Shown piece after piece: positions 4,095-61,368 of a stretch of DNA of 64,000 bases. The notes below the pieces were generated by a model, which saw only the letters and a program-made list of their open reading frames with translations, had not been told where the DNA came from and did no database searches. The stretch covers positions 72,315 through 136,314 of the forward strand of contig NIVC01002838.1 of assembly GCA_002269645.1 (NCBI GenBank), written 5' to 3'. The position numbers were made by a program, and so were the translations under genes. The DNA comes from Macrostomum lignano. Taxonomy: Eukaryota. Position 1 is the first letter of the stretch; every line of letters starts with the position of its first letter.

Positions 4095-5320
4095 ACTATG
4101 TCTACCTCTCTATCTACCTGTCTTTCTACCTCTTTATCTACCTGTCTGTCTACCTCTCTATCTACCTGTCTTTCGACCTCTCTATCAACCTGTCTGTCTA
4201 CCTATCTATCTACCTGTCTGTCTACCTCTCTATCTACCTGTCTGTCTACCTCTCTATCTACCTGTCTGTCTACCTCTCTATCTACCTGTCTGTCTACCTC
4301 TCTATCTACCTGTCTGTCTACCTCTCTATCTACCTGTCTGTCTACCTATCTATCTACCTGTCTGTCTACCTATCTATCTACCTGTCTGTCTACCTCTCTA
4401 TCTACCTGTCCGTCTACCTCTCTATCTACCTGTCTGTCTACCTATCTATCTACCTGTCTGTCTACCTCTCTATCTACCTGTCTGTCTACCTCTCTATCTA
4501 CCTGTCTGTCAACCTCTCTATCTACCTGTCTGTCTACCTCTCTATCTACCTGTCTGTCTACCTCTCTATCTACCTGTCTGTCTACCTCTCTATCTACCTG
4601 TCTGTCTACCTCTCTATCTACCTGTCTGTCTACCTCTCTATCTACCTGTCTGTCTACCTCTCTATCTACCTGTCTGTCTACCTCTTTATCTACCTGTCTG
4701 TCTACCTCTCTATCTACCTGTCTGTCTACCTATCTATCTACCTGTCTGTTTAATTTTCTATCCACCTGTCTGTCTACCTCTCTATCTACCTGTCTGTCTA
4801 CCTCTCTATCTACCTGTCTGTCTACCTCTCTATCTACCTGTCTGTCTACCTCTCTATCTACCTGTCTGTCTACCTATCTATCTACCTGTCTGTCTACCTC
4901 TTTATCTACCTGTCTGTCTACCTCTTTATCTACCTGTCTGTCTACCTCTCTATCTACCTGTCTGTTTAATTTTCTATCCACCTGTCTGTCTACCTCTCTA
5001 TCAACCTGCCTGTCTACCTATCTATCTACCTGTCTGTCTACCTCTCTATCTACCTGTCTGTCTACCTCTCTATCTACCTGTCTGTCTACCTCTCTATCTA
5101 CCTGCCTTCTACCTCTCTATCTACCTGTCTGTCTACCTCTCTATCTACCTGTCTGTCTACCTCTCTATCTACCTGTCTGTCTACTTCTCTATCTACCTGT
5201 CTTTCGACCTCTCTATCTACCTGTCTTTCGACCTCTCCATCTATCCATCTCTATCTATCTATCTACCCGTCTGTCTATCTCTCTATCTACCAATTTTTGA
5301 CTGCTCTATCTACCTAACTG
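4095..5320. repeat. 24-bp minisatellite (TCTACCTGTCTGTCTACCTCTCTA)
   Basis: Tandem units visible directly; source of the STCL/LPV artefact ORFs. Confidence 0.95.
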
Positions 5321-5954
5321 CCTGACTGTCTACCCTAAAAATTAAGGTGGAAGTCTGGCCGTGCACAGTGCGTGCAGTATCGAAGCAGCATGACAAGTAT
5401 CAAAAAGTTGCAAAACGGAAGCACAGGAAACGAGAGTACACACGGGTAGATGAGGTGTCGAAAAGTCGAAGCTTTTAGCAGAATGACTGTTTTATTGTGT
5501 CGTTTTTATGATTCTTGGTCCTTCCCCCTCTTCTCCCAGAATTTGCATCGCAAGCATCCCCACCACTGCGCCAGTGGCTTCATCTGCAGTTTAATATCCC
5601 GATTTCATATACTTCAGCTCTCTCCCCAGCTTTCTTGTTCCTTCCTTCCTCCCATCCCAACCGGGAGATTTGGTTGGGAAAATTTCTGCTAAATGCAGAT
5701 CCAGCGCGAGGGAACAATGAGAGAATTGAGGAGGCTTGCAGTTTCGTTGGGTCTGGGGGGGGGGAGAATTCAGAGTTCGCCTCATCAGTCCGATAGGACG
5801 CAGGTTGTGACAAATGCTAAGCCTAGAGCAGACCGCACATAGTTCTCCCGCCTTTAATCTGGCTCGATCGATTGAGTAGACTGACGCGTGACTTTGGAGC
5901 ATGAATCTTTTATTTAAAGTAAAAAAATTGCTTAAATATAAAGACTGAGTAGGG

Positions 5955-7270
5955 TGAGTATCAGGTGAGGATTAGGGTGAGGATTAAGTGAAGATTAGGT
6001 GAGGATTAAGGTGATGATTAGGTGAGGATTAGAGTGAGGATTAAGTGAAGATTAGGTGAGGATTAAAGTGAGAATTAGGTGAGGATTAGAGTGAGGATTA
6101 GGTAAAGATTAGTTGAGGATTAAAGTGAGAATTAGGTGAGGATTAAGTGAGGATTAGGTGAGGATTAAGGTGAGGATTAGGGTGAGGATTAAGTGAGGAT
6201 TAGGTGAGGATTAAGGTGAGGATTAGGGTGAGGATTAAGTGAAGATTAGGTGAGGATTAAGGTGATGATTAGGTGAGGATTAGAGTGAGGATTAGGTAAA
6301 GATTAGGTGAGGATTAAAGTGAGGATTAGGTGAGGATTAAGTGAGGATTAGGTGAGGATTAAGGTGAGGATTAGGGTAAGGATTAATTGAGGATTAGGTG
6401 AGGATTAGGTGAGGATTAAGGTGAGGATTAGGTGAGGATTAGGTGAGGATTAGGTGAGGATTAAGATGAGGATTAGGTGAGGATTAGAGTGAGGATTATG
6501 TAAAGATTAGGTGAGGATTAGGTGAGGATTAGGTAAGGATTAAGTGAGGATTAGGTAAAGATTAGGTGAGGATTAGGTGAGGATTAGGTGAGGATTAGAG
6601 TGAGGATTAGGTAAAGATTAGGTGAGGATTAAGGTGAGGATTAGGTGAGGATTAGGTGAGGATTAGGTGAGGATTAAGGTGAGGATTAGGTGAGGATTAG
6701 GTGAGGATTAGAGTGAGGATTATGTAAAGATTAGGTGAGGATTAGGTGAGGATTAGGTAAGGATTAAGTGAGGATTAGGTAAAGATTAGGTGAGGATTAG
6801 GTGAGGATTAGGTGAGGATTAGAGTGAGGATTAGGTAAAGATTAGGTGAGGATTAAGGTGAGGATTAGGTGAGGATTAGGTGAGGATTAGGTGAGGATTA
6901 AGGTGAGGATTAGGTGAGGATTAGGTGAGGATTAATGTGAGGATTAGGGTAAGGATTAGGTGAGGATTAAGATGAGGATTAGGTGAGGATTAGAGTGAGG
7001 ATTAGGTAAAGATTAGGTGAGGATTAGGTGAGGATTAGGTGAGGATTAGAGTGAGGATTAGGTAAAGATTAGGTGAGGATTAGGTGAGGATTAGGTGAGG
7101 ATTAAGATGAGGATTAGGTGAGGATTAGAGTGAGGATTAGGTAAAGATTAGGTGAGGATTAGGGTGAGGATTAGGGTGTGGATTAGGGTGAGGATTAGGG
7201 TGAGGATTAGAGAGGGGATTAGGTGAGGATTAGGGTGAAGATTAGAGAGGGGATTAGGTGAAAACTAGGT
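5955..7270. repeat. 11-12-bp telomere-like minisatellite (GGTGAGGATTA)
   Basis: Tandem GGTGAGGATTA(G/A) units containing TTAGG and occasional TTAGGG. Confidence 0.95.
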
Positions 7271-7531
7271 GAGCTTTAAATTGCTGATTGATTTTTAATG
7301 CTGCCACTCGCACAATCAGCTCAGGACTTGAGTAAAGCTAAAAGCTTAGAGATAGTTCTCCCTCTTTATTAACAGTTTCAAAAGTTTTGTCTGTGGCACT
7401 AATTGAACCCTAATGCGGTTAAAAAGCTGCTGCATAATTTGAGAGGAATGTTAGTTGCTCTGTCAGTCAACAGTTGCTAACCGCTGTCTCAATTGCTTGT
7501 AGGAATCTCAGGTCATCTCGAAGCGACACTA

Positions 7532-10500
7532 ATGGCGTCCTCTCATGTAAGCCGGTAGTTCTTTAGTATTAAAACTGTTATAGTTTCATTCTCATGCTAT
7601 GACGATTCCCTCATAACCCCGTATCCTCTGCAGCCGAAATCCCTAATGACGGTGCAAGTTGGTCAAGCTGGGATACAAATTGGACATGCGGTGTGGGAGC
7701 TGTTCTGTCTGGAGCACAACATATCGGCAGATGGCACCCCGAAACTGCACTGTGGCGATCTCGGCAATGTGGAATCAGTGTTTGTGCCCACACCGAAGGG
7801 GCGCTACTTTCCCAGGAGCCTGTTTGTGGACACAGACCCCGCTTGCGTTGGTGAGAGGAGATGGGGTCTCAGGGTGAGAGTAGATAGGGTCTGAGGGTGA
7901 TGATAGTAGATAGGGTCTGAGGGTGAGAGTAGATAGGGTCTGAGGGTGAGAGTAGATAGGGTCTGAGGGTGAGAGTAGATAGGGTCTGAGGGTGAGAGTA
8001 GATAGGGTCTGAGGGTGAGAGTAGATAGGGTCTGAGCGTGAGAGTAGATAGGGTCTGAGGGTGAGAGTAGATAAGGTCTGAGGGTGAGAGTAGATAGGGT
8101 CTGAGGGTGAGAGTAGATAGGGTCTGAGGGTGAGAGTAGATAAGGTCTGAGCGTGAGAGTAGATAGGTCTGAGGGTGAGAGTAGATACTAGATAGGGTCT
8201 GAGGGTGAGAGTAGATAGGGTCTGAGCGTGAGAGTAGATAGGGTCTGAGGGTGAGAGTAGATAAGGTCTGAGGGTGAGAGTAGATAGGGTCTGAGGGTGA
8301 GAGTAGATAGGGTCTGAGGGTGAGAGTAGATAAGGTCTGAGCGTGAGAGTAGATAGGTCTGAGGGTGAGAGTAGATACTAGATAGGGTCTGAGGGTGAGT
8401 AGATAGGGTCTGAGGGTGAGAGTAGATAGGGTCTGAGGATGAGAGTAGATAGGGTCTGAGGGTGAGAGTACAATGGTTGAGTCCCTGGTAAGAGAAATAG
8501 GCTAAACGGTTCTCCGTAAATCATGAAGCAGGTAAATCCCAGCCAGGAAGTTCATAGCAAACTTTAATCGCAAAAAGTTCACCCGCCCTGAAACCGCCAC
8601 CAGACGAGATGCGCTCAGGACCCTACAAGCAGCTGTTCAGCTCCCGGCAGCTGCTCTCAGACCAGGTGGACGCGGCCAGCAACTACACAACTGGTCGCTA
8701 TGGTTACGCCAAGCGGCTGGTGCCGGACACGCTCGAACGACTGCGCTGGATGACTGAGAAGGCGGACTCGAAGCCGACGCTCTGTCTGGTGCACAGCGCC
8801 TGCGGCGGCACCGGCAGCGGCTTCGCCGTGGCCTGCCTCGCCAGGATGGCCGACGAACTGGGCATCGAGCCGCAGAACATCATCGATCTGTGCGTTGTGC
8901 CCGGCGTCTCCGCTGGCCAGAGCTCCTGCGAGCTGCTCAACACCGCCCTGTACCTGGACGAGTCGCAGGATCTGACCAGGCAGACCGTCTGCGTCTCCAA
9001 CTCGGCGATGTTCCGCCTGTGCAACTCGCAGCTGCAGTCGCAGGGGGCGGCCACCTTCGCACACGCCAACCGCGCCCTGGCAGCCGCCTTCAGCAACCTC
9101 ACCGCCACGGAGCGCCTGCCCGGCTCCAGCGTCGGCCTGTCCGGCATCCTGGACAGCCTGCTGCCGTTCCGTCACCTGCGCTACACCCTGCTAGCCTGCG
9201 CTCCTTTCCTCACCGCCGAGAGCGCTAGGACGGAGCGTCCAACCGCCAAGTCCGCCACCGCGGCCGTGTTGGAGCTGTCCAGCCAGTTCCTCGACGTTGA
9301 CCTCCGTCAGGGTCGCCACGCTGCCGGCTTCCTGTTGTACCGCGGCGACGCCAGTCTGGGCGAGGCGCAGAAGCTGGCGGCGGAGCTGACTTCCCGAGGC
9401 CGAGTGCAGTTCCAGGACTGGGCGCCTACCGGCTTCCGCACCGGCGTTGTGACGCCTCCGCCAGTTGCTCCGCCTGGCAGCGGCTTCGCAGACGTCCCGA
9501 TTTCCGCGACGCTGCTTGCCAGCCACTCTGGCATCTCCGACATCTTCGCCAAGCTGGCCGCGAGTTCTAGGAAGCTGCAAGACCGCGACATGTTCGTGCA
9601 CAACTACGAGGGCGCGATTGTGTCTCTGCTGAACAAAACGGTGGAGGGGAGCAACGCGGGGATGAATTTAGGGGCAGGCGGACCGGGGACCAACACGGAC
9701 TCGGACTCGCAGAAACCGACCAGCCTGGACTCGGCTTCGGCCGATAACAACAGCGTGCGAATGTGGATGAACCCGCCGGCGGCTCAGGCTGCGCTGGCTT
9801 CGGGCGGTGGTCGTGGTGAGCTGCAGAACTACCGGCGCAGGCGACTGACGTCCAGAGAGCCCGGAAGCCACGCCACCCAGAAGCCGCAGCAGCAGCAGCA
9901 AGAACAGCAGCAAGACGAGGAGGAGCCTCAGGTGTCGCGTACCTGCGCACTAAGCGACGTCTTCGGCGTTCGAGTCCGCCTATCATCGGCCATCGACTAC
10001 CTGCAGCGTGTGTCGATCAGCTACGCCGCCGACAGTCAAACCGACGCAGGTGACGCCGCCGATGTCGATGCTGCCGCAGTTGGCGACGACAATGACGTCA
10101 TCGAGGCGACTAACGGCGAGGAGGACGGCAAGGAGGACGAGGAGGAGACGGAGGGCGCCGACGAGAAGGATGGAGAGGAGGGCGAGCAGCGAGTGGATAA
10201 CAAGCTGCACGTGACCATCAATGATGTCGGCGGGATCGGCAGAGATCTGGAAAATGTCGACTCCAATCGGTAAGAGGTCGTGGGCACCCCATGGCGCAAT
10301 GCCTTTCGGCGAAATCGGTCCCGCAACCACCTCTGAGGCCAGATGCATTTACATGTAGCTTCTTACTCTGATACAAAAACACAGGTCCGTTAGCGGCCAG
10401 TCTGCCCAGTCTGACTCAAAGCAACAACAGCAACAAGCGGACGGGAACTCAGTCAGCGCAGAAGAGGAGCCGCAGGTTGAACCATCTCAGCAAAGCGAGC

Positions 10501-10715
10501 AGGCGGATCTCTCAGCCAGCAAAGACCCCAACGATCCTCCGGCGAACAACGCCAACCAGCAGGGCGAGTTGCCTGTCCCAAGCAGTCGTTGGTGTCTCCG
10601 ACGTCGCAGCAAGTCTCGCCGACCAGGCGAAGCCGCCGCCACCGCCGCCGCTGCCGCCGCCGCTGCAGCAGCCGCAGGAAAACACCCGCAATCGCTGAAG
10701 CCGAGAAAATTCTGA
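7532..10715 (+). CDS. Highly divergent alpha-tubulin-like protein, ~742 aa, 4 exons
   Basis: Exons 7532-7546, 7634-7850, 8604-10269, 10385-10715 (2229 nt, phases 0/1/2 consistent). Motifs VQVGQAGIQIG, PRSLFVDTDP, DAASNY, HSACGGTGSG, FQDWAPTGF and the alpha-type S9-S10 loop (VVTPPPVAPPGSG). Confidence 0.88.
7634..7850 (+). CDS. Tubulin-like gene exon 2
   Basis: Acceptor CTGCAG, donor TTG|GTGAGA; PKSLMTVQVGQAG...DTDPACV. Confidence 0.9.
7851..8470. repeat. 23-24-bp minisatellite (GTGAGAGTAGATAGGGTCTGAGG) filling tubulin intron 2
   Basis: The first degenerate unit starts exactly at the splice donor. Confidence 0.95.
8604..10269 (+). CDS. Tubulin-like gene exon 3
   Basis: Acceptor CACCAG; G|AC GAG ATG gives DEMRSGPYKQLF; donor CG|GTAAGA at 10270. 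Confidence 0.9.
10385..10715 (+). CDS. Tubulin-like gene exon 4 (Q/E-rich, basic and poly-Ala tail)
   Basis: Acceptor ACACAG at 10384; open in frame for 110 codons to TGA; GC-rich, exon-like composition. Confidence 0.7.
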
Positions 10716-11019
10716 TGAAGTACCAACGAAGTCTGGGCGGCCAATGACGCGATCACGTCGTGTTGGCGTTTTAAACTAACGAATTGTTAATTTCTGGTCA
10801 AAAAAATTAATGCAAAAACTAATATGACTTTTGTCTAATGGTTTTTAGTTTCGCCCAGACTGACCGAACGCAGCTATATTGCGCTGCCAACAAAGAAAAT
10901 ATATGAACAGCTGATACATTTCTTTGAAAGCGTTTGAGAATTTGAAATAGTTCAATTTTGTTGCTTTAGAAATTTGCCACATTCTTCGCCGTTCAAGTTA
11001 TCATCTCCACTGATCCCAC

Positions 11020-11760
11020 TGCATCTCTGCCCACCTCACCCTATATCTGCTCACATCACTTGACCTCTGCTCACCTCATCTCACCTCTGCTCACCTCACC
11101 TCACCTCTGCCCACCTCACTTCATATCTGCTCACCTCACTTCACATCTGCTCACCTCACTTCACATCTGCTCACCTCACTTCACCTCTGCTCACCTCACT
11201 TCACATCTGCTCACCTCACTTCACATCTGCTCACCTCACTTCACATCTGCTCACCTCACTTCACATCTGCTCACCTCACCTCACCTCTGCCCACCTCACT
11301 TCATATCTGCTCACCTCACTTCATATCTGCTCACCTCACTTCACATCTGCTCACCTCACTTCACATCTGCTCACCTCACTTCACATCTGCTCACCTCACC
11401 TCACCTCTGCTCACCTCACCTCTGCTCACCTCATCTCACCTCTGCTCACCTCACCTCATATCTGCTCACCTCACTTCACATCTGCTCACCTCACCTCACC
11501 TCACCTCATCTCACTTCACATCTGCTCACCTCACTTCACAGCTGCTCACCTCACCTCACCTCACCTCATCTCACCTCTTCTCACCTCACTTCACCTCTGC
11601 TCACCTCACCTCACCTCTTCTCACCTCACCTCTTCTAACCTCACCTCACATCTTCCCACCTCACTTCAGACTTGCTCACCTTGCCTCTCTACTCGCATCT
11701 ACTAACCTCGCTTCACATCTTTACTCACATCTCTACTCTGTGCTCATCTCACATAGTCTC
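11020..11760. repeat. 20-bp minisatellite (TCTGCTCACCTCACTTCACA)
   Basis: Tandem units visible directly. Confidence 0.9.
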
Positions 11761-12319
11761 TATTTTATCTTACTATTTATCTCACTATTTATCTCCCTGA
11801 CAGGGTTGCAGCTCATTAAACCAAGTTAACCATATCCAAGTTAGAAGTTTAACAATGCTCTTAATTAACGATAACTCATAAGAAACCAAATATATAAAGT
11901 TTATATTTATATTTTTATTCAGCTCTCGTCAATAAATAAAAACAACGAAAAAAGGAAACACGAAAAATCTACGTTAAAAAGTTAATTGAACAGGTATTTA
12001 AGAGGGAACAAGTTTGAGGGCATACACAGTTTAAAATAGCCATATAATAAATTTGGAGGCCCTGAAAAGTTTAATTAGTTCAAAATGTACTTTAATTTAG
12101 TTTTAAACATTTTATTATTTGAAGCATGCCGCATCAGGAGCTGCGTCGATCTCATTTCGAAAAGCAAACAGAGGCAAAGGAAAAAAGACAGTGAGCAAAC
12201 GAAATGTGTCATCATTATTCAAACGGGAACCAACGATTGAATGCAGAGAAAACAAGCTGCATCTTGCATTTGTGACCGAATTGGGGCTGCTTAAGTTTAA
12301 TCGAGCTTAACCGGGAGCC

Positions 12320-12660
12320 AATGTACACTGAGGGGTGGTGGGGCAGGGGTTGAGTGAGGGCCAGTGTACACTGAGTGGTGGTGGGGCAGGGGTCGAGAGA
12401 GACCCAGTGTACACTGAGGAGTGGATGGGCAGGGGTTGAGAGAGAGCCAGTGTACACTGAGGAGTGGATGGGCAGGGGTTGAGAGAGAGCCAGTGTACAC
12501 TGAGGAGTGGATGGACAGGGGTTGAGAGAGAGCCAGTGTACACTGAGGGGTGGATGGGCAGGGGTTGAGAGAGAGCCAGTGTGCACTGAGGGGTGGTAGG
12601 GCAGGGGTTGAGAGGGAAAGAGAGCCAGTGTAAACTTGAGGGATTGGTGGGACAAGGGCT
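12320..12660. repeat. ~43-bp minisatellite (GCCAGTGTACACTGAGGAGTGGATGGGCAGGGGTTGAGAGAGA)
   Basis: About 7 tandem units. Confidence 0.9.
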
Positions 12661-13140
12661 GACGGAGAGCAAGATTGCATAAATTATTCGCTAAACTTAA
12701 CTGACTAAACCACAACAGAGAGAATTGATAAGTCAGAGCAATAAAGCCAAACGTCTCTCAATCAATAACTTGCAACACCTTTAAAGTGTCAGAAGGCGCA
12801 GAAAAGTTAAAGAACAAATAATAAAGTCATTGGTTATTTACTGTAATTAGCGCGCTTACAGAAAAATATTCAATAATAACTTTAGAGAAAAAAGAACCTT
12901 GGAGAGAAATCGCAGCTGTCAAGAGGATTAAGGTTAGGTTGATTTTTACTCGATTAATTCTATATTTTACAAGAAACAGTGCAATAACATGTTGATATTA
13001 GGGGCAACGCAGACAAAGCACAGAACATAGAGACGTCATAATAATAGCCCGCGGTTTCTCAGATTAGAATGAAAAATACAATTCTGTCATACGCTTTGCA
13101 GAAGGTATATTTGAATACAAGCTTCCAGTGAGGCTCTGGC

Positions 13141-32360: not shown

Positions 32361-33019
32361 CCTAATTGTGTCAGTAGTGCATAACGTGCCTTTCGTTTAC
32401 CAAAGTAAGTATCTAATCTAGAAGTGTGTCGAGCGAGGTTAATCAATTGAATTCCAGCAGTTTTGAGCCGAACTCTGACAGGATCAGTGAGATACCGGAG
32501 AGTGCAAACCAAGCAAAAAGCATTGAAAATCGAAAACCTATATTGTTGCCAATGCGGGTCTACTCACATTCTTAAAGCTGACTCGTGATATGCTGATCTC
32601 AAAAAAATCTAGAACATATCCAGTCGAACTTTGAGTTGAGTTATTTTTGTGTGTACTGTTCGATGAATCGAACACTTCTTGCTTGAGTTTGGTGGAGGGT
32701 TTTTCTAGGAAAAATCACATCTCTAGGATGAGGCCGGTGCAGAATCTGTTTTAAGCTACGCCCGTTTCTCGTCACAACCAATACCGAAAGCAAACCAATG
32801 GGAAGCCGTTCAATGGGAGTTTTTTCTGCGACACTTCCTGTTTGACTGATTCATAACAAAAACAAATAATGAAATAGCTAATGAAGAATAAATAGAAATA
32901 ATTAGAACTACAAAATAGTTATTTTGTAGCATACTTAACCCAGAATATTTAAGCGGCAGTGAAGTTCCTTGAAACTCTTATTTAAAAGACAGAATTCCAC
33001 GAAAAAGTTTTTGAAGGAT

Positions 33020-33990
33020 CGCAGACATTCCTGGAAAGGCATTTTTAAAGGGCTTCAGACATTCCTGGAAAGGCATTTTTAAAGGGCTTCAGACATTCCT
33101 GGAAAGGCATTTTTGAAAGGCCGCAGACATTCTTGGAAAGGAATTTTTGAAGGGCCGCAGACATTCCTGGAAATCTTTTATTGAAGGGCCGCAGACATTC
33201 CTGGAAAGGCATTTTTGAAGGGACGCAGACATCCCGGAAAGGCATTTTTGAAGGGACGCAGACATTCCTGGAAAGGCCTTTTTTTGAAGGGACGCAGACA
33301 TTCCTGGAAAGGCATTTTTGAAGGGCCGCAGACATTCCTGGAAAGGCATTTTTGAAGGGCCGCAAACATTCCTGGAAAGGCATTTTTGAAGGGCCGCAGA
33401 CATTCCAGGAAAGGCCTTTTTTGAAGGGCCGCAGACATTCCTGGAAAGGCATTTTTGAAGGGCCGCAGACATTCCTGGAAAGGCATTTTTGAAGGGCCGC
33501 AGACATTCCTGGAAAGCATTTTTGAAGGGCTGCAGACATTCCTGGAAAGGCATTTTTGAAGGGCTGCAGACATTCCTGGAAAGCATTTTTTTGAAGGACT
33601 GCAGACATTCCTGGAAATCTTTTATTGAAGGGCCGCAGACATTCCAGGGAAGGCCTTTTTTGAAGGGACGCAGACATTATTGGAAAGGCATTTTGAAGGG
33701 CCACAGTCATTCTTGGAAAGGCATTTTTGAAGGGCCGCAGACATTTCCTGGAAATCTTTTATTGAAGGGCCGCAGACATTCCTGGAAAGGCATTTTTGAA
33801 GGGCCGCAGACATTCCTGGAAAGGCATTTTTGAAGGGCTGCAGACATTCCTGGAAAGGCCTTTTTTGAAGGGCCGCAGACATTCCTGGAAAGGCATTTTT
33901 GAAGGGCCGCAGACATTCCTGGAAAGGCATTTTTGAAGGGCTGCAGACATTCCTGGAAAGGCCTTTTTTGAAGGGCCGCAGACATTCCTA
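33020..33990. repeat. 34-bp minisatellite (GAAGGGCCGCAGACATTCCTGGAAAGGCATTTTT)
   Basis: About 28 units. Confidence 0.95.
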
Positions 33991-35014
33991 GAGACCAGAA
34001 TATTTTAGCGACTGTATGAAAGTTGTGGATAATCAATGATTTCACAGCCATGAAATTTTTTTAAAAATCTAAAAATTTCAAGGTCACTGAAATTCCCGGA
34101 AGCACCACTGACGTTCCAGAAAAGCACATTTCTACAAAACATTTTGACTGAGCAGATATTGGTTGGATGAAGTATATAAAAAAGCAAAAAAATGCGTCAG
34201 TTAAATTGATAAAAGGGCCATGAATTTTTTCCGTACTGAGCTTATCAACCTCGATGTTAAAGGGGTTGACAGCCGAAAATATATTTAATATTTCTCCGAT
34301 TTTCGGGACAGAAAATCGAAACGTTTGTAGCGATCCCGGTCTGGTTAGCTTCGGGCTGTTTCGAAAAATCGATATTTTTACAAATTGAACATTGAGTTCT
34401 TTACTTATAGTAGACACACACAAATCTAGGACATTGTTATCTAAATTGTTATTTACAAAATTATTTTTTCGATTTATCGATAAAATGGAAACCTTTGCAG
34501 GATAAAATTAATGGCCCTTCAATAAAAAATTAATGATTTTTATCAAACAATTTGACTCTTGAACACATAAAAGCGCATAAAATCGCAAAAGTGCTCACTT
34601 GCCGACTCAACCAGAATTTGAGGTCTGTGACATCTCGCATTCTCATCCATGGCTCAATCAGAAATATCCTTCCTTTGAGCTTGCTGTTTGAGTTTTAACA
34701 GATAGTCAAGACTTTACTTGTCTGTCAAAGATTGCAACCTCTCTGCATAGCAACAAATACAGTGATAAATACATTGGACTGTCTCAACTGCTTGGATCTA
34801 AAGATGCACCAATGGTAGGGCAGGGATCTGCTTGGGCTAGCGATCGGCCAATGGCTGCCTCAGTTGCGTTACATTCGTTCTTCACTTCACTTGCATGTGG
34901 GGATGAAGTGTGCAGAGAGGCGGCGGATGAACCATTCAAAGGTGGAGATGGGGGCGGGGAGGACGGAGAGCAAGGCTGAGGACGAGAAGAGGTGAGACAT
35001 TGCGGAGGAGTAGA

Positions 35015-38000
35015 CGAGAGGGAGATGGCAGGAGGGAGAGGAGAGAGATGGCAGCAGAGAGAGGAGAGAGATGGCAGCAGAGAGAGGAGAGAGATGGCAG
35101 CAGAGAGAGGAGAGAGATGGCAGCAAAGAGAGGAGAGAGATGGCAGCAGAGAGAGGAGAGAGATGGCAGCAGAGAGAGGAGAGAGATGGCAGCAGAGAGA
35201 GGAGAGAGATGGCAGTGAGAGGAGAGAGATGGCAGCAGAGAGAGGAGAGAGATGGCAGCAGAGAGAGGAGAGAGATGGCAGCAGAGAGAGGAGAGAGATG
35301 GCAGCAGAGAGAGGAGAGAGATGGCAGCAGAGAGAGGAGAGAGATGGCAGCAGAGAGAGGTGAGAGATGGCAGCAGAGAGAGGAGAGAGATGGCAGCAGA
35401 GAGAGGAGAGAGATGGCAGTGAGAGGAGAGAGATGGCAGCAGAGAGAGGAGAGAGATGGCAGTGAGAGGTGAGAGATGGCAGCAGAGAGAGGAGAGAGAT
35501 GGCAGCAGAGAGAGGAGAGAGATGGCAGCAGAGAGAGGAGAGAGATGGCAGCAGAGAGAGGAGAGAGATGGCAGCAGAGAGAGGAGAGAGATGGCAGCAG
35601 AGAGAGGAGAGAGATGGCAGTGAGAGGAGAGAGATGGCAGCAGAGAGAGGAGAGAGATGGCAGTGAGAGGTGAGAGATGGCAGCAGAGAGAGGAGAGAGA
35701 TGGCAGCAGAGAGAGGAGAGAGATGGCAGCAGAGAGAGGAGAGAGATGGCAGCAGAGAGAGGAGAGAGATGGCAGCAGAGAGAGGAGAGAGATGGCAGTG
35801 AGAGGTGAGAGATGGCAGCAGAGAGAGGAGAGAGATGGCAGCAGAGAGAGGAGAGAGATGGCAGCAGAGAGAGGAGAGAGATGGCAGCAGAGAGAGGAGA
35901 GAGATGGCAGCAGAGAGAGGAGAGAGATGGCAGCAGAGAGAGGAGAGAGATGGCAGTGAGAGGAGAGAGATGGCAGCAGAGAGAGGAGAGAGATGGCAGT
36001 GAGAGGTGAGAGATGGCAGCAGAGAGAGGAGAGAGATGGCAGTGAGAGGAGAGAGATGGCAGCAGAGAGAGGAGAGAGATGGCAGTGAGAGGTGAGAGAT
36101 GGCAGCAGAGAGAGGAGAGAGATGGCAGCAGAGAGAGGAGAGAGATGGCAGTGAGAGGAGAGAGATGGCAGCAGAGAGGAGAGAGATTGTAGCAGAGAGA
36201 GGAGAGAGATGGCAGCAGAGAGAGGAGAGAGATGGCAGTGAGAGGAGAGAGATGGCAGCAGAGAGAGGAGAGAGATGGCAGCAGAGAGAGGAGAGAGATG
36301 GCAGTGAGAGGTGAGAGATGGCAGCAGAGAGAGGAGAGAGATGGCAGCAGAGAGAGGAGAGAGATGGCAGTGAGAGGAGAGAGATGGCAGCAGAGAGGAG
36401 AGAGATGGCAGCAGAGAGAGGAGAGAGATGGCAGCAGAGAGAGGAGAGAGATGGCAGCAGAGAGAGGAGAGAGATGGCAGCAGAGAGAGGAGAGAGATGG
36501 CAGTGAGAGGTGAGAGATGGCAGCAGAGAGAGGAGAGAGATGGCAGTGAGAGGAGAGAGATGGCAGCAGAGAGAGGAGAGAGATGGCAGCAGAGAGAGGA
36601 GAGAGATGGCAGTGAGAGGAGAGAGATGGCAGCAGAGAGAGGAGAGAGATGGCAGTGAGAGGTGAGAGATGGCAGCAGAGAGAGGAGAGAGATGGCAGCA
36701 GAGAGAGGAGAGAGATGGCAGTGAGAGGTGAGAGATGGCAGCAGAGAGAGGAGAGAGATGGCAGCAGAGAGAGGAGAGAGATGGCAGTGAGAGGAGAGAG
36801 ATGGCAGCAGAGAGGAGAGAGATGGCAGCAGAGAGAGGAGAGAGATGGTAGCAGAGAGAGGAGAGAGATGGCAGCAGAGAGAGGAGAGAGATGGCAGCAG
36901 AGAGAGGAGAGAGATGGCAGCAGAGAGAGGAGAAAGATGGCAGCAGAGAGAGGAGAGAGATGGCAGTGAGAGGAGAGAGATGGCAGCAGAGAGAGGAGAG
37001 AGATTGTAGCAGAGAGAGGAGAGAGATGGCAGCAGAGAGAGGAGAGAGATGGCAGTGAGAGGAGAGAGATGGCAGCAGAGAGAGGAGAGAGATGGCAGTG
37101 AGAGGAGAGAGATGGCAGCAGAGAGAGGAGAGAGATGGCAGTGAGAGGTGAGAGATGGCAGCAGAGAGAGGAGAGAGATGGCAGCAGAGAGAGGAGAGAG
37201 ATGGCAGTGAGAGGAGAGAGATGGCAGCAGAGAGGAGAGAGATGGTAGCAGAGAGAGGAGAGAGATGGCAGCAGAGAGAGGAGAGAGATGGCAGCAGAGA
37301 GAGGAGAGAGATGGCAGCAGAGAGAGGAGAGAGATGGCAGTGAGAGGAGAGAGATGGCAGCAGAGAGGAGAGAGATGGTAGCAGAGAGAGGAGAGAGATG
37401 GCAGCAGAGAGAGGAGAGAGATGGCAGCAGAGAGAGGAGAGAGATGGCAGCAGAGAGAGGAGAGAGATGGCAGCAGAGAGAGGAGAGAGATGGCAGCAGA
37501 GAGAGGAGAGAGATGGCAGCAGAGAGAGGAGAGAGATGGCAGCAGAGAGAGGAGAGAGATGGCAGCAGAGAGAGGAGAGAGATGGCAGCAGAGAGAGGAG
37601 AGAGATGGCAGTGAGAGGTGAGAGATGGCAGCAGAGAGAGGAGAGAGATGGCAGTGAGAGGAGAGAGATGGCAGCAGAGAGAGGAGAGAGATGGCAGCAG
37701 AGAGAGGAGAGAGATGGCAGTGAGAGGAGAGAGATGGCAGCAGAGAGAGGAGAGAGATGGCAGTGAGAGGTGAGAGATGGCAGCAGAGAGAGGAGAGAGA
37801 TGGCAGTGAGAGGAGAGAGATGGCAGCAGAGAGAGGAGAGAGATGGCAGTGAGAGGTGAGAGATGGCAGCAGAGAGAGGAGAGAGATGGCAGCAGAGAGA
37901 GGAGAGAGATGGCAGTGAGAGGAGAGAGATGGCAGCAGAGAGGAGAGAGATTGTAGCAGAGAGAGGAGAGAGATGGCAGCAGAGAGAGGAGAGAGATGGC

Positions 38001-38425
38001 AGCAGAGAGAGGAGAGAGATGGCAGCAGAGAGAGGAGAGAGATGGCAGCAGAGAGAGGAGAGAGATGGCAGCAGAGAGAGGAGAGAGATGGCAGAAGGGA
38101 GAGGAGAGAGATGGCAGCAGAGAGAGGAGAGAGATGGCAGCAGAGAGAGGAGAGAGGTGGCAGAAGGGAGAGGAGAGAGATGGCAGCAGAGAGAGGAGAG
38201 AGATGGCAGAAGGGAGAGGAGAGAGATGGCAGCAGAGAGAGGAGAGAGATGGCAGAAGGGAGAGGAGAGAGATGGCAGCAGAGAGAGGAGAGAGATAGCA
38301 GCAGAGAGAGGAGAGAGATGGCAGCAGAGAGAGGAGAGAGATGGCAGAAGGGAGAGGAGAGAGATGGCAGCAGAGAGAGGAGAGAGATGGCAGCAGAGAG
38401 AGGAGAGAGATGGCAGAGAGAGAAG
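35015..38425. repeat. 23-bp minisatellite (GAGAGATGGCAGCAGAGAGAGGA), ~3.4 kb
   Basis: Largest array in the window; source of the 1200-aa artefact ORFs. Confidence 0.97.
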
Positions 38426-38799
38426 AGATGACAAGAGTTTAGGGGCAGCAATAATGTATAAAACGGATTTTCACTCGGCACAATCCTGCGCACTTTTTCC
38501 CAGCCATCACGAATAAACTTGTAAGCTGAAGAAAATTGATTTTCGTTCAAAGCTGAGCCGGCAATCAGCGAGAATTCATCAAAGCAAGAGGCAAATCAAA
38601 TGGTCAATTCGGAGCCGAATGAAAGATGGGCAAGAGAAAAGGAAAGAAAAAATAAATCTGAATGAATTTTGGCACCGGAGCGGCAGCACCCCAGTCAGCA
38701 GCTCTGGGAGGGTGCTGGGGAACTGGCGGTGCCCTACATTTCACTCCACATTTCATGGATTGCAATGTCTTAAAGCCTTATGTCGAGTGACGCGTGGAG

Positions 38800-39565
38800 A
38801 GAAAGGGGGGCGAAGAGAGGGCGGAGGGCGGAGAGAGGGCGGATATGGGTGGAGGATTTCCGGAGAAAGGGGCGGAGAGAGGGGGCGGCGGAGAGAGGGG
38901 CGGAGAGAGGACGGAGAGAGGGGCGGGGAGAGGGCGGAGAGAGGGGCGGAGAGAGGGCGGAGGAAGAGGGCGGAGAGAGGGTCGGAGAGAGATGGGTGGA
39001 GAGAGAGGCGGAGAGAGGGGCGGAAAGAGGGGCGGAAAGAGGGGCGGAAAGAGGGGCGGAGAGAGGGGCGGAGAGAGAGGCGGAAAGAGGGGCGAAGAGA
39101 GGGGCGGAGAGGGGGGCGGAGAGAGGGGCGGAGAGAGATGGGCGGAGAGAGGGGCGGAGAAAGGGGCCGAGAGAGGGGCGGAGAGAGAAGCGGAGAGAGA
39201 TGGGCGGAGAGAGAGGCGGAGAGAGGGGCGGAGAGAGGGGCGGAGAGGGGGGCGGAGAGAGGGGCGGAGAGAGATGGGCGGAGAGAGGGGCGGAGAAAGG
39301 GGCCGAGAGAGGGGCGGAGAGAGAAGCGGAGAGAGATGGGCGGAGAGAGAGGCGGAGAGAGGGGCGGAGAGAGAGTCGGAGAGAGGGGCGGAAAGAGGGG
39401 CGGAGAGAGGGGCGGAGAGAGGGGGCGGCGGAGAGAGAGGCGGAGTGAGGGGCGGAGAGAGGGGCGGAGAGAGGGGCGGAGAGAGGGGCGGAGAGAGAAG
39501 CGGAGAGAGGGGCGGAGAGAGGGGCGGAGAGAGGGGGTGGAGAGAGGGGGCAGCGGAGAGAGAGG
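38800..39565. repeat. 12-bp G-rich minisatellite (GAGAGGGGCGGA)
   Basis: Tandem units visible directly. Confidence 0.93.
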
Positions 39566-39927: not shown

Positions 39928-40524
39928 CAGACAGACAGCGTTTGAATTTGCGCCATAAGCGAGGCATCAATTGACAATTTGAGCAATTTTGAGTTGCTAC
40001 GCCAGAGAGTGCATCTGCACTTCCGCTCTTTAGGGAATTCGAGCTGCTCAGCTCAGTACGACGGGATGTTTCGAGTGAATGGCACAGGAAATTTTAAAAA
40101 AAGCCTGGCTTGCTTTAAAACGTCAGCTAGCATTGCTGGGTGGTGGAGGCGGCTTTGTTTTTTTGCACGGAGCGATTTCATGAAGTTGAGAAAGAAGCTG
40201 ATGATGGGAAGCCATGCGCCCGGCCCCCAGACTCTCTATTGTTCTGCCAGTTGCATTCAAAAAAATTTTTCTGATCCCTGCATTCTCGCTTTTATGATGG
40301 ACCGATGGGTGAAAATGGGGATGTTTGTCGGGAGCACAGAACTGAAGGCAAACTTTTAGTAGCATGATGATGGGATGATGGAGAATGGTTGGGTTGAGAG
40401 AGGAGCGAAGTTCCAACTAAAGTTGAGTACAGTAAAGTAGAGAGTATCTTAGTAAGAAATGTAAAAAAAGATTTAGATTACAGTAGAGTAGACTTCAGTA
40501 GAGTAGAGTGGTGTAAAGTAGAGC

Positions 40525-41770
40525 AGAGGGCAGTAGAGTAGAGAGTAGAGGGCAGTAGACTAAAGAGTAGAGGGCAGTAGACTAGAGAGTAGAGGGCAGT
40601 AGACTAGAGAGTAGAGGGCAGTAGACTAGAGAGTAGAGGGCAGTAGAGAGTAGAGGGCAGTAGAGTAGAGAGTAGAGGGCTGTAGAGAGTAGAGGGCAGT
40701 AGAGAGTAGAGGGCAGTAGAGAGTAGAGGGCAGTAGAGTAGAGAGTAGAGGGCAGTAGACTAGAGAGTAGAGGGCAGTAGAGAGTAGAGGGCAGTAGAGT
40801 AGAGAGTAGAGGGCAGTAGAGAGTAGAGGGCAGTGGAGAGTAGAGGGCAGTAGACTAGAGAGTAGAGGGCAGTAGACTAGAGAGTAGAGGGCAGTAGAGA
40901 GTAGAGGGCAGTAGAGTAGAGAGAAGAGGGCAGTAGACTAGAGAGTAGAGGGCAGTAGACTAGAGAGTAGAGGGCAGTAGACTAGAGAGTAGAGGGCAGT
41001 AGACTAGAGAGTAGAGGGCAGTAGAGAGTAGAGGGCAGTAGAGAGTAGAGGGCAGTAGACTAGAGAGTAGAGGGCAGTAGACTAGAGAGTAGAGGGCAGT
41101 AGAGAGTAGAGGGCAGTAGAGAGTAGAGGGCAGTAGACAGTAGACTAGAGTAGAGGGCAGTAGAGTAAAGAGTAGAGGGCAGTAGACTAGAGAGAAGAGG
41201 GCAGTAGACTAGAGAGTAGAGGGCAGTAGACTAGAGAGTAGAGGGCAGTAGACTAGAGAGTAGAGGGCAGTAGACTAGAGAGTAGAGGGCAGTAGAGAGT
41301 AGAGGGCAGTAGACTAGAGAGTAGAGGGCAGTAGACTAGAGAGTAGAGGGCAGTAGAGTAAAGAGTAGAGGGCAGTAGACTAGAGAGAAGAGGGCAGTAG
41401 ACTAGAGAGTAGAGGGCAGTAGACTAGAGAGTAGAGGGCAGTAGACTAGAGAGTAGAGGGCAGTAGACTAGAGAGTAGAGGGCAGTAGAGAGTAGAGGGC
41501 AGTAGACTAGAGAGTAGAGGGCAGTAGACTAGAGAGTAGAGGGCAGTAGAGAGTAGAGGGCAGTAGACTAGAGAGTAGAGGGCAGTAGACTAGAGAGTAG
41601 AAGGCAGTAGAGTAGAGAGTAGAGGGCAGTAGACTAGAGAGAAGAGGGCAGTAGACTAGAGAGTAGAGGGCAGTAGAGTAGAGAGTAGAGGGCAGTAAAC
41701 TAGAGAGAAGAGGGCAGTAGACTAGAGAGTAGAGGGCTGTAGAGAGTAGAGGACAGTAGAGAGTAGAATA
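40525..41770. repeat. 22-bp minisatellite (AGTAGAGGGCAGTAGACTAGAG)
   Basis: Tandem units with 17-bp deletion variants. Confidence 0.95.
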
Positions 41771-59420: not shown

Positions 59421-61368
59421 ACATTTACCATAGACAAAAACCGTTTCAACAGAATTCACGAGGATTTTTACCACAGACGAAAGCAATCCTGCACGCCGAA
59501 TAAAATAAGAATAAGAATGGCTGGAGTTAGTTACGTAGTGATAAGAGTGTTTGTTATTTAGAAAATTGAAATCAACCATGGCCACTCTGAGTGACAAAAA
59601 TTTGGTTGGTCCATTGATAGACCTGCGCTACGTGTCTGTGTGTGGAGTTAGTAAAGAGGAGATGGTTCTAGCTGGTACGACTAGCAAGCTAGAGACAGAT
59701 GCCGACAAACTGACAGCTTTGGTAGCAGATGTCAACTTCGATGATGAGCTGGCCAAGCTGATATCTGCGGATCCCGAATCGCTGGCTACGCTCGACGAAC
59801 TGGATCATCTCGTGAACCAATTGGAACGAGACAATGAGTGCCGAATAAGTGTTTCCAAGCAGAAGGCTATTATCAAGCGTCTTACCGACTGGCTTGAGAG
59901 CTGCAATGTGCATCTTGACTTCAAGAACGTCTCTGTTGAAGAACTCGCACGCTGGATTCGATACTTCTATGCTTCGAAGCGTAAACCCGATGGAGTATTT
60001 TATTCTCCTAACACCATTGTCGGGTTGCGCGCTGCTTTGTATCGCTACTTTATGAAGTTGCGCGGACTAAATATTATTGCCGAGCCAGCCTTTCACGCTG
60101 CAAACTTGATGGTAAAGCATGTGTGTAATGCGTACCTAAAATCAGGAGGACGAATTCGACACTACGATGCGATTGAATCCGAAGATCTGATGAAGTTGGC
60201 CAGCTATTTTGACCGAAGCACACCAGCCCGTCTGCAGGAGGAGGTGTATTTCAATATTATATTCTATTACGGCAATCGTGGCCGTGAATGGTTGCGTGGC
60301 CTGACTGCGAATTCGTTCAGCAAGACGGTCCTTGCCAACGGCATGACGGCGATCAAGCTACAAAGCAGCACTTCCAAGAATGTGAAGGGATCAGTGGATA
60401 TTCGCGACTGTGATGACAACAAGGAGGCTCTTATGGTTGCTAAGCCAGGATCAAAATGCTGCCCTGTTGCGGCCTTCAAAATGTATCTATCGAAAATTGT
60501 TGCAGTTCCCGACTGGAACGGCACCGATTTTTTTGTTCGGCCGAACCAACAGGTTGGACCAAACGGAATCTGGTACACCAAGCAAGCTGTTGGTATCAAC
60601 ACATTAGGGCCGCTGATGAAGACAATATCTGCAAAGGCAAATCTTTCGAAGCCGTACACAGGTCACTGTGTAAGAGCGACCGTTGTTACGGAACTTCACG
60701 AGGCTGGATACGCCGTAGAAACCATCGCTAAAGTGACGGGTAACAAGGTAAGCTGAAAACCGTTACAATGTGTGTACAAAACGTAGCAAAGCTTGCACAT
60801 TGTATCTGATAGAATTATTCTTACGTTTATGCGAAAATTTCAGTCCAGTACATCCGTCGAACGGTATATTCGACGTGGAAAGCGAAGAGACACTATAATG
60901 ACGGGCATGAGTGAACAATTGAGTATTGCTCTTGACGGAACTGGCTCTTCGGAGCGGCATTCGGAGTGCGGCGCAGTCTAAAGTGCTGTTAACAAGTGAG
61001 CCGACTACGTCGGCGTCAACAAAGAAGATGAGGATCATCGCTGATGGGGATTCCAACGTGGTGCAGTTCGTTTTCGAGTAGATAAGGATCGAAATTGATC
61101 TACGAGCTATTGTTCTTGGAAAGGAAACTATGTCTGTTTGAGTGTTCCATTGCTTTAATACGTTAATGTTGTTACTCATTTTTGTCAATATTTCTCATTT
61201 TGTGTCACTTGTTTGTTCTTATTGAAATACAATTCAGTCTATTACCGTACAGGAATGAAAATGCATTCCTGCACTGTAAGCATTAACATTTTAAATGAAG
61301 ATTTACCATGGACGAAAGCATTTCCGCACGCATAAATGCATTCCTGCACGTAGAATCAAACAAGAATA
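59421..61368 (+). mobile_element. Putative Crypton-like element bounded by imperfect direct repeats
   Basis: Left 59463-59512 TTACCACAGACGAAAGCA-ATCCTGCACGCCGAATAAAATAAGAAT versus right 61300-61367 TTACCATGGACGAAAGCA-[20 nt]-TTCCTGCACGTAGAATCAAACAAGAAT; true termini not proven. Confidence 0.55.
59578..60981 (+). CDS. Crypton/DUF3504-type tyrosine recombinase, 435 aa, one 96-bp intron
   Basis: Exon 1 59578-60747, intron 60748-60843 (AAG|GTAAGC...TTTCAG), exon 2 60844-60981. Motifs YSPNTI, YGNRGRE, CPV, YTGHCVRAT, VTGNK|SSTSVERY. Confidence 0.88.

Follow-up and report, generated by a model that had tools for sequence, protein, structure and literature searches.

The 64,000-nt window analysed here, identical to contig NIVC01002838.1 of the Macrostomum lignano assembly Mlig_3_7, carries a gene, Mlig033756g2, whose product is an extremely divergent derivative of alpha-tubulin with a very long tail. 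We rebuilt the gene model from the sequence and obtained four exons on the + strand, with GT..AG at every intron, and a coding sequence of 2229 nt for a protein of 742 residues (MASSHPKSL...KPRKF*). The rebuilt protein is 100% identical to PAA54932.1 (BOX15_Mlig033756g2); the gene is thus already in public databases, only as an uncharacterised GenBank "hypothetical protein". Two further copies are present in the assembly, g1 (NIVC01000144.1) and g3 (NIVC01000038.1). All three loci lie between the same neighbours, an amiloride-sensitive channel (ASC) gene on the upstream side and, downstream, a PDEase gene in opposite orientation, and we therefore treat them as homeologs or duplicates of one locus in a partly duplicated genome. 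The gene is laid out as follows (window positions; residue labels such as K40 follow canonical alpha-tubulin).

7532 to 7546, +: exon 1, MASSH; a start codon in place of the canonical MREC N-terminus
7547 to 7633, +: intron 1, 87 nt, GT..AG, phase 0; 85/87 positions identical to homeolog g3
7634 to 7850, +: exon 2, residues 6-78 (ending on the first base of codon 78)
7661 to 7672, +: T1 motif GQAG in exon 2, residues 15-18
7826 to 7840, +: T2 motif VDTDP in exon 2
within exon 2, +: shortened H1-S2 loop without K40, from the alignment
7851 to 8603, +: intron 2, 753 nt, phase 1, interrupting the codon that corresponds to alpha-tubulin D76
8604 to 10269, +: exon 3, 1666 nt, residues 78-633; a single open reading frame (ORF) for the remaining tubulin body and most of the tail
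8801 to 8821, +: T4 signature CGGTGSG, residues 144-150
8924 to 8941, +: T5/H5 SCELLN, replacing the near-invariant VVEPYN (P184L, Y185L), from the alignment
8996 to 9070, +: SNSA for DNEA (N206 equivalent kept; D205 and E207 lost), one extra residue in the H6-H7 loop, and FAHAN (Y224F; N228 equivalent kept)
9119 to 9184, +: degenerate T7 loop/H8, PGS-SVGLSGILDSLLPFRHLRY, with D251G, catalytic E254G, N258S and a 1-residue deletion
9446 to 9499, +: long alpha-type S9-S10 loop, residues 359-376
9614 to 9937, +: 108-residue Q/S/G/A-rich insertion after FVHNYEG, replacing GEGMEEGEF, residues 415-522
9938 to 10018, +: candidate amphipathic helix RTCALSDVFGVRVRLSSAIDYLQRVSI, a possible H12 equivalent at low confidence, residues 523-549
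10019 to 10586, +: acidic D/E/Q-rich tail segment, net charge -32, split by intron 3, residues 550-700
10270 to 10384, +: intron 3, 115 nt, phase 2
10385 to 10715, +: exon 4, residues 633-742 and the stop codon
10419 to 10439, +: polyQ tract of the tail, 5 Q longer in homeolog g3
10587 to 10712, +: basic poly-Ala C-terminal end, net charge +10, residues 701-742

The elements that the initial annotation had picked out are all present: the four-exon structure, GQAG, GGTGSG, the equivalents of N206 and N228 and the alpha-type S9-S10 loop. Its observations on size and termini are likewise borne out, the protein having lost MREC, lacking an EEY/F end and exceeding a 451-residue alpha-tubulin by 291 residues. 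At the start, MASSHPKSLMTV, PKSL aligns to MREC after five extra N-terminal residues.

We placed the protein in the tubulin superfamily by profile, structure and phylogeny. Pfam identified Tubulin (PF00091, 1.5e-32, residues 9-218) and Tubulin_C (PF03953, 1.7e-15, residues 269-395), and 60/60 listed PDB sequence matches were alpha-tubulins, with E values of 8e-71 to 2e-65 over query residues 8-414; matches this strong cannot be coincidental. The AlphaFold2 (AF2) model of a 98%-identical homeolog has predicted local distance difference test (pLDDT) values mostly above 90 for residues 4-400 and below 50 for most of the tail. Its top Foldseek matches in the PDB were alpha-tubulin chains, with template modelling (TM) scores of 0.85-0.88 normalised to the target; taking residues 1-414 as the tubulin body, the TM score to alpha-tubulin is 0.87. 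The body is thus predicted with high confidence to retain the tubulin fold.

The phylogenetic comparison with alpha-, beta- and gamma-tubulins that had been proposed for this gene was carried out by neighbour joining (NJ) on 404 columns with 200 bootstraps, using 23 diverse alpha-tubulins, 5 beta-tubulins and human gamma-tubulin (TUBG1, a sequence confirmed to be identical to PDB 7qj0_U). The Mlig033756 family fell inside an alpha-like clade with 100% bootstrap support against beta and gamma. Distances of the M. lignano family were 1.33-1.5 to alpha, 1.85-1.95 to beta and 2.2 to gamma; human TUBG1 was the most distant sequence in the tree, and no grouping with gamma-tubulin was seen. The S9-S10 loop has the canonical alpha length, with the beta-tubulins in the alignment 8 residues shorter. 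An exhaustive phmmer search against 1.84 billion 50%-identity representatives, with the 98%-identical homeolog as query, agreed with this order: among the 150 matches listed, the best non-self alpha-like score was 230 bits and recognisable beta-tubulins scored about 150-165 bits. Intron 2 lies in the codon aligned to D76, which we take to be the position of a conserved animal alpha-tubulin intron, and a paralog found in M. lignano, Mlig018576, has an intron at the same place. Together the Pfam and PDB matches, the predicted structure, the tree and the intron site show descent from alpha-tubulin through ordinary gene duplication. The claim of an extremely divergent alpha-tubulin derivative therefore stands.

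That divergence is concentrated in particular elements. Identity to animal alpha-tubulin is 32% over 411 aligned positions; the other alpha sequences sampled (n=22) average 50-95% identity to animal alpha per structural segment, with at least 60% in most segments. We compared the nucleotide-contact residues, a set that we take from the known tubulin structure literature, and found 14/19 kept (Q11, A12, D69, D98, A99, A100, S140, G143, G144, T145, G146, E183, N206 and N228), two changed conservatively (E71D and Y224F) and three lost (N101S, S178G and T179Q). N206 and N228 correspond to N210 and N233 of Mlig033756g2, and GGTGSG stands at residues 145-150, the first G of canonical GGGTGSG having become C. 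Motifs that are near-invariant among the alpha-, beta- and gamma-tubulins compared are changed, among them VVEPYN to SCELLN and DNEA to SNSA. Further losses are D205S, E207S, P184L, Y185L, D251G, E254G, N258S, W407N and K40C, and the GEGMEEGEF junction is absent. The T7/H8 residues needed for catalysis (D251 and E254) are thus missing from Mlig033756; Mlig018576 has N and N at 251 and 254. The retained pocket suggests that the protein would bind GTP as at the N-site. Judged from the alignment, features typical of a conventional microtubule subunit, both catalytic and regulatory, are lost, and the fold and most of the GTP pocket appear to be retained.

We then asked how far each element is shared with the paralog. 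Mlig018576 scored 410 bits in the exhaustive search, with 45-46% identity over the body, and occurs in M. lignano in copies g1-g4; each of the two genes is present in 3-4 homeologous copies. At its loci NIVC01002544.1 and NIVC01004532.1 the gene occupies 8001-12020 of each retrieved locus, with models of 599, 641 and 790 residues. The two genes are sister groups inside alpha (100% bootstrap) and share TDP, xCELxN, xNSA, the extra residue in the H6-H7 loop, ATFAH, ACAPF, DVDLRQG and RGRVQF, as well as the loss of D251, E254 and W407, a G/S-rich insertion after H11' and a long tail. Mlig018576 differs in its shorter insertion (about 28 residues), an extra intron near residue 310, a tail that is Ser/Pro-rich and basic rather than acidic and a confidently modelled H12-like helix.

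Identity between the paralogs is distributed unevenly. The nucleotide-binding elements are well kept (H1/T1 77%, T2 77%, T4 69%, H6 80%, H7 70%), as are the H10-S9 loop (FxDWAPxxF, 78%) and the H2-S3 loop (72%). Poorly kept are T7 (25%), H8 (12%), H10 (7%) and H11 (21%), with H3, H4, H9 and the M-loop at 30-38%. On our structural assignments, the poorly kept elements make up the face that would meet the beta-tubulin of the next dimer and activate its GTPase, together with a large part of the outer and lateral surface. Such a distribution fits selection for the tubulin fold and for holding a nucleotide, and not for the canonical alpha position in a dynamic lattice. It also lends plausibility to the non-canonical role proposed in the initial annotation, as even between the paralogs there is no conservation of the catalytic T7/H8 region or of large parts of the longitudinal and outer surfaces.

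The same pattern bears on two other readings. Mlig033756 could be a specialised alpha-tubulin isotype that dimerises with beta-tubulin and co-polymerises into ordinary lattices, for example in one cell type, with its tail serving as a built-in microtubule-associated protein or extended E-hook. The alpha-type fold and alpha-length S9-S10 loop, the largely intact GTP pocket, the conservation of the H2-S3 and H10-S9 loops within the family, the acidic stretch resembling an expanded tubulin C-terminal tail and the D76-codon intron, which indicates descent from a normal alpha gene, would all agree with such an isotype. However, 32% identity to alpha is well below that of functionally studied isotypes such as Drosophila alphaTub67C and mammalian TUBAL3, which reportedly have 67-75%. 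Identities of 7-38% between the paralogs across T7, H8, H10, H3, the M-loop and H11 would be unexpected if both proteins fitted one canonical lattice, and W407, GEGMEEGEF and a recognisable H12 are missing. Both paralogs have lost D251 and E254; human E254A tubulin shows no GTP hydrolysis and forms hyperstable microtubules, and the mutation abolishes dynamics and is lethal in yeast (PMC7018511). We regard an ordinary-lattice isotype as unlikely.

Alternatively, the protein might not polymerise at all, its minus-end face binding no tubulin, and act as a gamma-like cap, nucleator or scaffold with non-tubulin partners. T7/H8 and H10 are unconstrained within the family, the G and S at the E254 and N258 positions are the residues of human gamma-tubulin, and H8 GILDSLLP (9143-9166) resembles gamma GLIASLIP. 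These are few residues, though, and may match by chance; Mlig018576 has N and N there, and the tree places the family firmly in alpha, far from gamma. A gamma-like function seems to us very unlikely.

The body is followed by about 330 residues, compared with about 37 in canonical alpha-tubulin. AF2 draws a helix over residues 388-429, of which 415-431 form the lower-confidence end (pLDDT 62-72), and residues 432-541 are predicted to be disordered (pLDDT below 50). An H12 profile hidden Markov model gave no significant match in the tail of either Mlig033756 or Mlig018576, and when the two tails were aligned locally, the score fell below the mean of shuffled sequences and showed no significant similarity. 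A MAFFT placement of canonical GEGMEE/H12 on the acidic stretch was considered spurious. Mlig018576 has a helix at 490-509, IVGLLKEASDHLEGLAQVYS, modelled at pLDDT 91-93 though no homolog aligned to it, after a 28-residue G/S-rich linker (462-489; pLDDT below 50 at 465-487). Its model aligns with alpha-tubulin over 459-464 columns at TM scores of 0.92-0.94. The AF2 helix and this alignment indicate, at the level of a predicted model, a docked H12-like helix that follows an insertion in the H11'-H12 loop. Separately, the 790-residue UniProt model of Mlig018576 includes an extra downstream exon (12404-12769 of the NIVC01002544.1 locus) encoding SELDEALDYESVGSS, which resembles the canonical H12 end LEKDYEEVG at a level that is not significant (E about 0.2-0.8). 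We also considered whether the long tail of Mlig033756 arose by fusion of gene models; since exon 3 runs without a break from the body through most of the tail, a gene or annotation fusion was rejected.

The extreme C-terminus of the window copy differs from that of the other copies. At about 10683-10685 the window has CCC and both homeologs have CCCC, a 1-nt homopolymer difference that shifts the last 8 codons to QSLKPRKF*; the homeologs end ...AIAEAEKILMKYQRSLGGQ. With the fourth C the frame continues to ...GKHPAIAEAEKILMKYQRSLGGQ*, giving 753-758 residues in the other copies. Copies g1 and g3 differ at three nucleotides over the last 19 codons, and read in the AIAEAEKILMKYQRSLGGQ frame 3/3 of these changes are synonymous, which argues that this frame is the ancestral, selected one. 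The KPRKF end could be either a homopolymer error of the PacBio assembly or a young copy-specific frameshift. Of the two termini described initially, the MASSHPKSL start is therefore upheld, whereas the KPRKF end belongs to the window copy and is not a feature of the gene. A terminal Y or F is absent in the ancestral frame too. Within the tail, the polyQ tract of genomic g3 numbers 10 Q, twice the 5 Q of g1 and g2; the annotated g3 protein has 5 Q, so that genome and transcript-based model disagree for that copy.

We next used the homeologs to examine selection. Between g2 and g3, the body shows 17 synonymous and 3 non-synonymous differences (ratio of non-synonymous to synonymous rates, dN/dS, 0.06; Fisher p=3e-8) and the tail 9 and 6 (dN/dS 0.20; p=0.003), so that the gene is under purifying selection. 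All three homeologs keep every splice site and an open 554-codon exon, and apart from five additional in-frame Q codons no indel separates them. RNA-seq transcript assemblies were the sole source of the GenBank gene models of Mlig_3_7 (PMC5730564), which provides transcript support for the gene and its junctions. Neutral evolution or lack of transcription, named at the outset as grounds for abandoning the reading, is contradicted on both counts. A decaying duplicate, pseudogene or annotation artefact might be suspected in a recently duplicated genome given the extreme divergence, the loss of several near-invariant tubulin motifs, the frameshift near the C-terminus of the window copy and the lack of significant similarity between the paralog tails. 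Against this stand the dN/dS values in body and tail, the intact splice sites and long exon of three homeologs, a 45%-identical paralog that keeps the same fold and motifs, and an RNA-seq-derived gene model with body and most of the tail in one exon. Decay is thus already largely refuted, and we consider it extremely improbable.

The search results also define how narrowly the family is distributed. Only 3 proteins scored above single ordinary alpha-tubulins (about 230 bits): Mlig018576 and two fused or duplicated alpha-tubulin models. An O. viverrini protein of 904 residues (439 bits) was rejected as a relative, being a fused tandem of two ordinary alpha-tubulins. A second search, in which canonical 5-mers were masked by X to leave family-specific words, returned just two M. 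lignano clusters, Mlig033756 and Mlig018576. Only M. lignano sequences are thus nearer to Mlig033756g2 than ordinary alpha-tubulins are, in agreement with the proposal of a lineage-specific tubulin. The gene is not the sole one of its kind, given its 45%-identical paralog and the existence of other long flatworm alpha-like tubulins, which join it weakly (58%). No firm grouping with a known long tubulin class, which would have spoken against lineage specificity, was seen among the sequences compared.

These other long alpha-like tubulins, all uncharacterised, come from Paragonimus (807-1102 residues; KAF6771345/KAF5401648), Dicrocoelium (about 1080; CAH8658580), P. westermani (647; KAF8569058), O. 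felineus (629; TGZ72184) and M. corti (624; VDD81484), with further examples in T. asiatica (531) and Dugesia (534; A7M6D9 of Dugesia ryukyuensis). Consecutive locus tags (CRM22_002246 and CRM22_002247) mark two of these genes as neighbours in O. felineus, and across trematodes, cestodes and a planarian there appears to be an unexplored flatworm expansion of long alpha-like tubulins. A literature search for divergent flatworm tubulins found nothing relevant. Like Mlig033756, these proteins are of flatworm origin and alpha-derived, with long C-terminal extensions; their identity to Mlig033756g2 is 28-32%. Unlike it, most keep VEPYN, DNEA, the glutamate at the E254 position, an 11-letter stretch and GEGMEE with H12. 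Their extensions begin only after an H12 of normal form, and they carry none of the M. lignano family signatures.

Mlig033756 could accordingly be read as the Macrostomum member of a flatworm-wide long alpha-like clade spanning Paragonimus, Dicrocoelium, Opisthorchis, Mesocestoides and Taenia. The many long (531-1102 residues) divergent matches from trematodes and cestodes suggest such a clade, and the NJ tree joins the M. lignano family to some of them at 58% and 42% bootstrap. This support is weak, however, and because all branches are long, attraction between the M. lignano family and the neodermatan tubulins is likely. Raw scores of the M. lignano protein are higher against canonical alpha (about 230 bits) than against the neodermatan proteins (about 180-197 bits), which carry none of the family-specific substitutions and mostly keep VEPYN, DNEA and the E254-position glutamate. 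The grouping is unproven, possibly reflecting long-branch attraction, and membership in a flatworm-wide clade is in our view doubtful.

The genomic surroundings of Mlig033756g2 are rich in tandem repeats. Intron 2 is nearly filled by a 23-nt minisatellite, GGTGAGAGTAGATAGGGTCTGAG, in about 26 copies (7850-8470). The array begins exactly at the 5' splice site, so each unit holds a donor-like GGTGAG motif and the intron contains about 26 potential cryptic donors. Intron 2 measures 753, 563 and 476 nt across the three homeologs, apparently through variation in repeat copy number. Strand-biased minisatellite arrays lie at 5000-5291, 5953-7273, 11026-11681, 12315-12614, 33008-33989, 35018-38428, 38861-39549 and 40520-41743; they include an 11-mer, GGTGAGGATTA, in 116 copies just 5' of the gene, a 20-mer in 33 copies just 3' of it and a 23-mer in 153 copies at 35-38 kb. 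The extreme GC/AT skew of the window, and the spurious ORFs that run to great length in it, are explained by these arrays. One such ORF, at 34784-38434 (1216 residues), was rejected as a gene, being a read-through of a minisatellite array with no Pfam hit. Downstream, the PDEase gene encodes a cyclic-nucleotide phosphodiesterase (PF08499 PDEase_I_N and PF00233 PDEase_I); it lies on the minus strand, from about 13141 to at least 20715, and the ASC gene is sited just upstream of the window. A 401-residue ORF at 59551-60756 (+) encodes a DUF3504 domain (E 2.3e-07), which we take to be typical of transposon-derived genes.

Taken together, we favour the view that Mlig033756g2 is a functional, lineage-restricted alpha-tubulin offshoot, probably an alpha-like subunit that holds GTP, lacks catalytic function and carries a giant acidic tail. 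Such a protein would bind GTP structurally, as alpha-tubulin does at the N-site, and would be unable to act as the GTPase-activating subunit for the tubulin beneath it. If it joined beta-tubulin or Mlig018576, the contact would be hydrolysis-dead and might lead to capping, stabilising or static, non-dynamic assemblies instead of ordinary dynamic microtubules. The tail may project a very large acidic brush, like an exaggerated E-hook without a tyrosination site. Because MREC is the motif on nascent alpha-tubulin that is recognised by TTC5 (PMC10403363), its loss would allow the Mlig033756 mRNA to escape TTC5-mediated tubulin autoregulation.

Several observations weigh against this view. Three nucleotide contacts (N101, S178 and T179) are lost and near-invariant VEPYN is changed, which could weaken nucleotide binding. 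T5 and H11-H11' are 10% and 35% identical to alpha, so that both longitudinal faces have diverged; with the plus-face elements T5 and H11' affected as well, it is uncertain whether the protein pairs with beta-tubulin. We presume the assignment of residues to helices, loops and interfaces on the basis of the 1JFF-era tubulin structure. The helix at residues 523-549 has low AF2 confidence, and sequence statistics lend it no support as H12. Non-coding divergence of the homeologous loci is about 1-3%, compared with dS=0.05, and constraint, especially on the tail, may therefore be overstated. A full-text literature search for the gene name found no expression pattern, localisation, partner or biochemistry for Mlig033756, and searches of the supplements of PMC5816591, PMC7336406, PMC5730564, PMC12896417 and PMC5946080 yielded no expression data for it. 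The sperm or ciliary role suggested in the initial annotation thus gained no evidence from these searches.

A bolder extension of the favoured view, which we consider quite unlikely, is that Mlig033756 and Mlig018576 form a new tubulin class confined to Macrostomum, whose distance from alpha would match that of beta and whose rank would be like that of ciliate theta, iota and kappa. Members of this class would have given up GTPase activation and would build static assemblies, for example in sperm, perhaps by pairing the two paralogs as a heterodimer or by pairing with beta-tubulin; a disordered insertion would have displaced H12, and in place of the tubulin-code tail there would be a giant acidic one. 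A role in sperm would be attractive, as Macrostomum sperm are aflagellate and have cortical microtubules and bristles.

Alpha-tubulin is among the most conserved eukaryotic proteins, and natural variants are rare that have lost the catalytic glutamate, the tag for autoregulation and the H11'-H12 region and tail of canonical form but remain under purifying selection. They can reveal which tubulin features are dispensable outside a dynamic lattice. A naturally E254-less alpha-like tubulin raises the question of whether it serves static arrays, end caps or a non-microtubule role. With RNAi, in situ hybridisation and transgenesis in place for M. lignano, the function of this orphan tubulin is directly testable there, and flatworms in general hold several uncharacterised long alpha-like tubulins.

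Set beside known systems, Mlig033756 is a taxon-restricted and highly derived tubulin in which the loss of the catalytic glutamate, the interrupted H11'-H12 region and the giant tail are unusual. With canonical alpha-tubulin (6e88_A, 5nqt_A and 1jff_A) it shares the Tubulin/FtsZ GTPase domain and Tubulin_C, the D76-codon intron and an acidic segment after the body. Canonical alpha-tubulin differs in having MREC, K40, a terminal Y, an H12 recognisable by sequence and an uninterrupted GEGMEEGEF. Divergent tubulins are also found in ciliates, as the alpha-like and beta-like tubulins of Tetrahymena and theta, iota and kappa of Paramecium. By description, these resemble Mlig033756 in being taxon-restricted, highly divergent and without canonical tails, but they belong to an unrelated lineage and arose independently. 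The engineered alpha-tubulins E254A and E254D (PMC7018511, PMC8764682; PDB 7sj9, which is among the Foldseek matches of the Mlig033756 homeolog) likewise lack the glutamate that activates GTP hydrolysis by the neighbouring beta-tubulin; they are otherwise wild-type and form normal, hyperstable lattices, whereas in Mlig033756 many other interface residues have changed.

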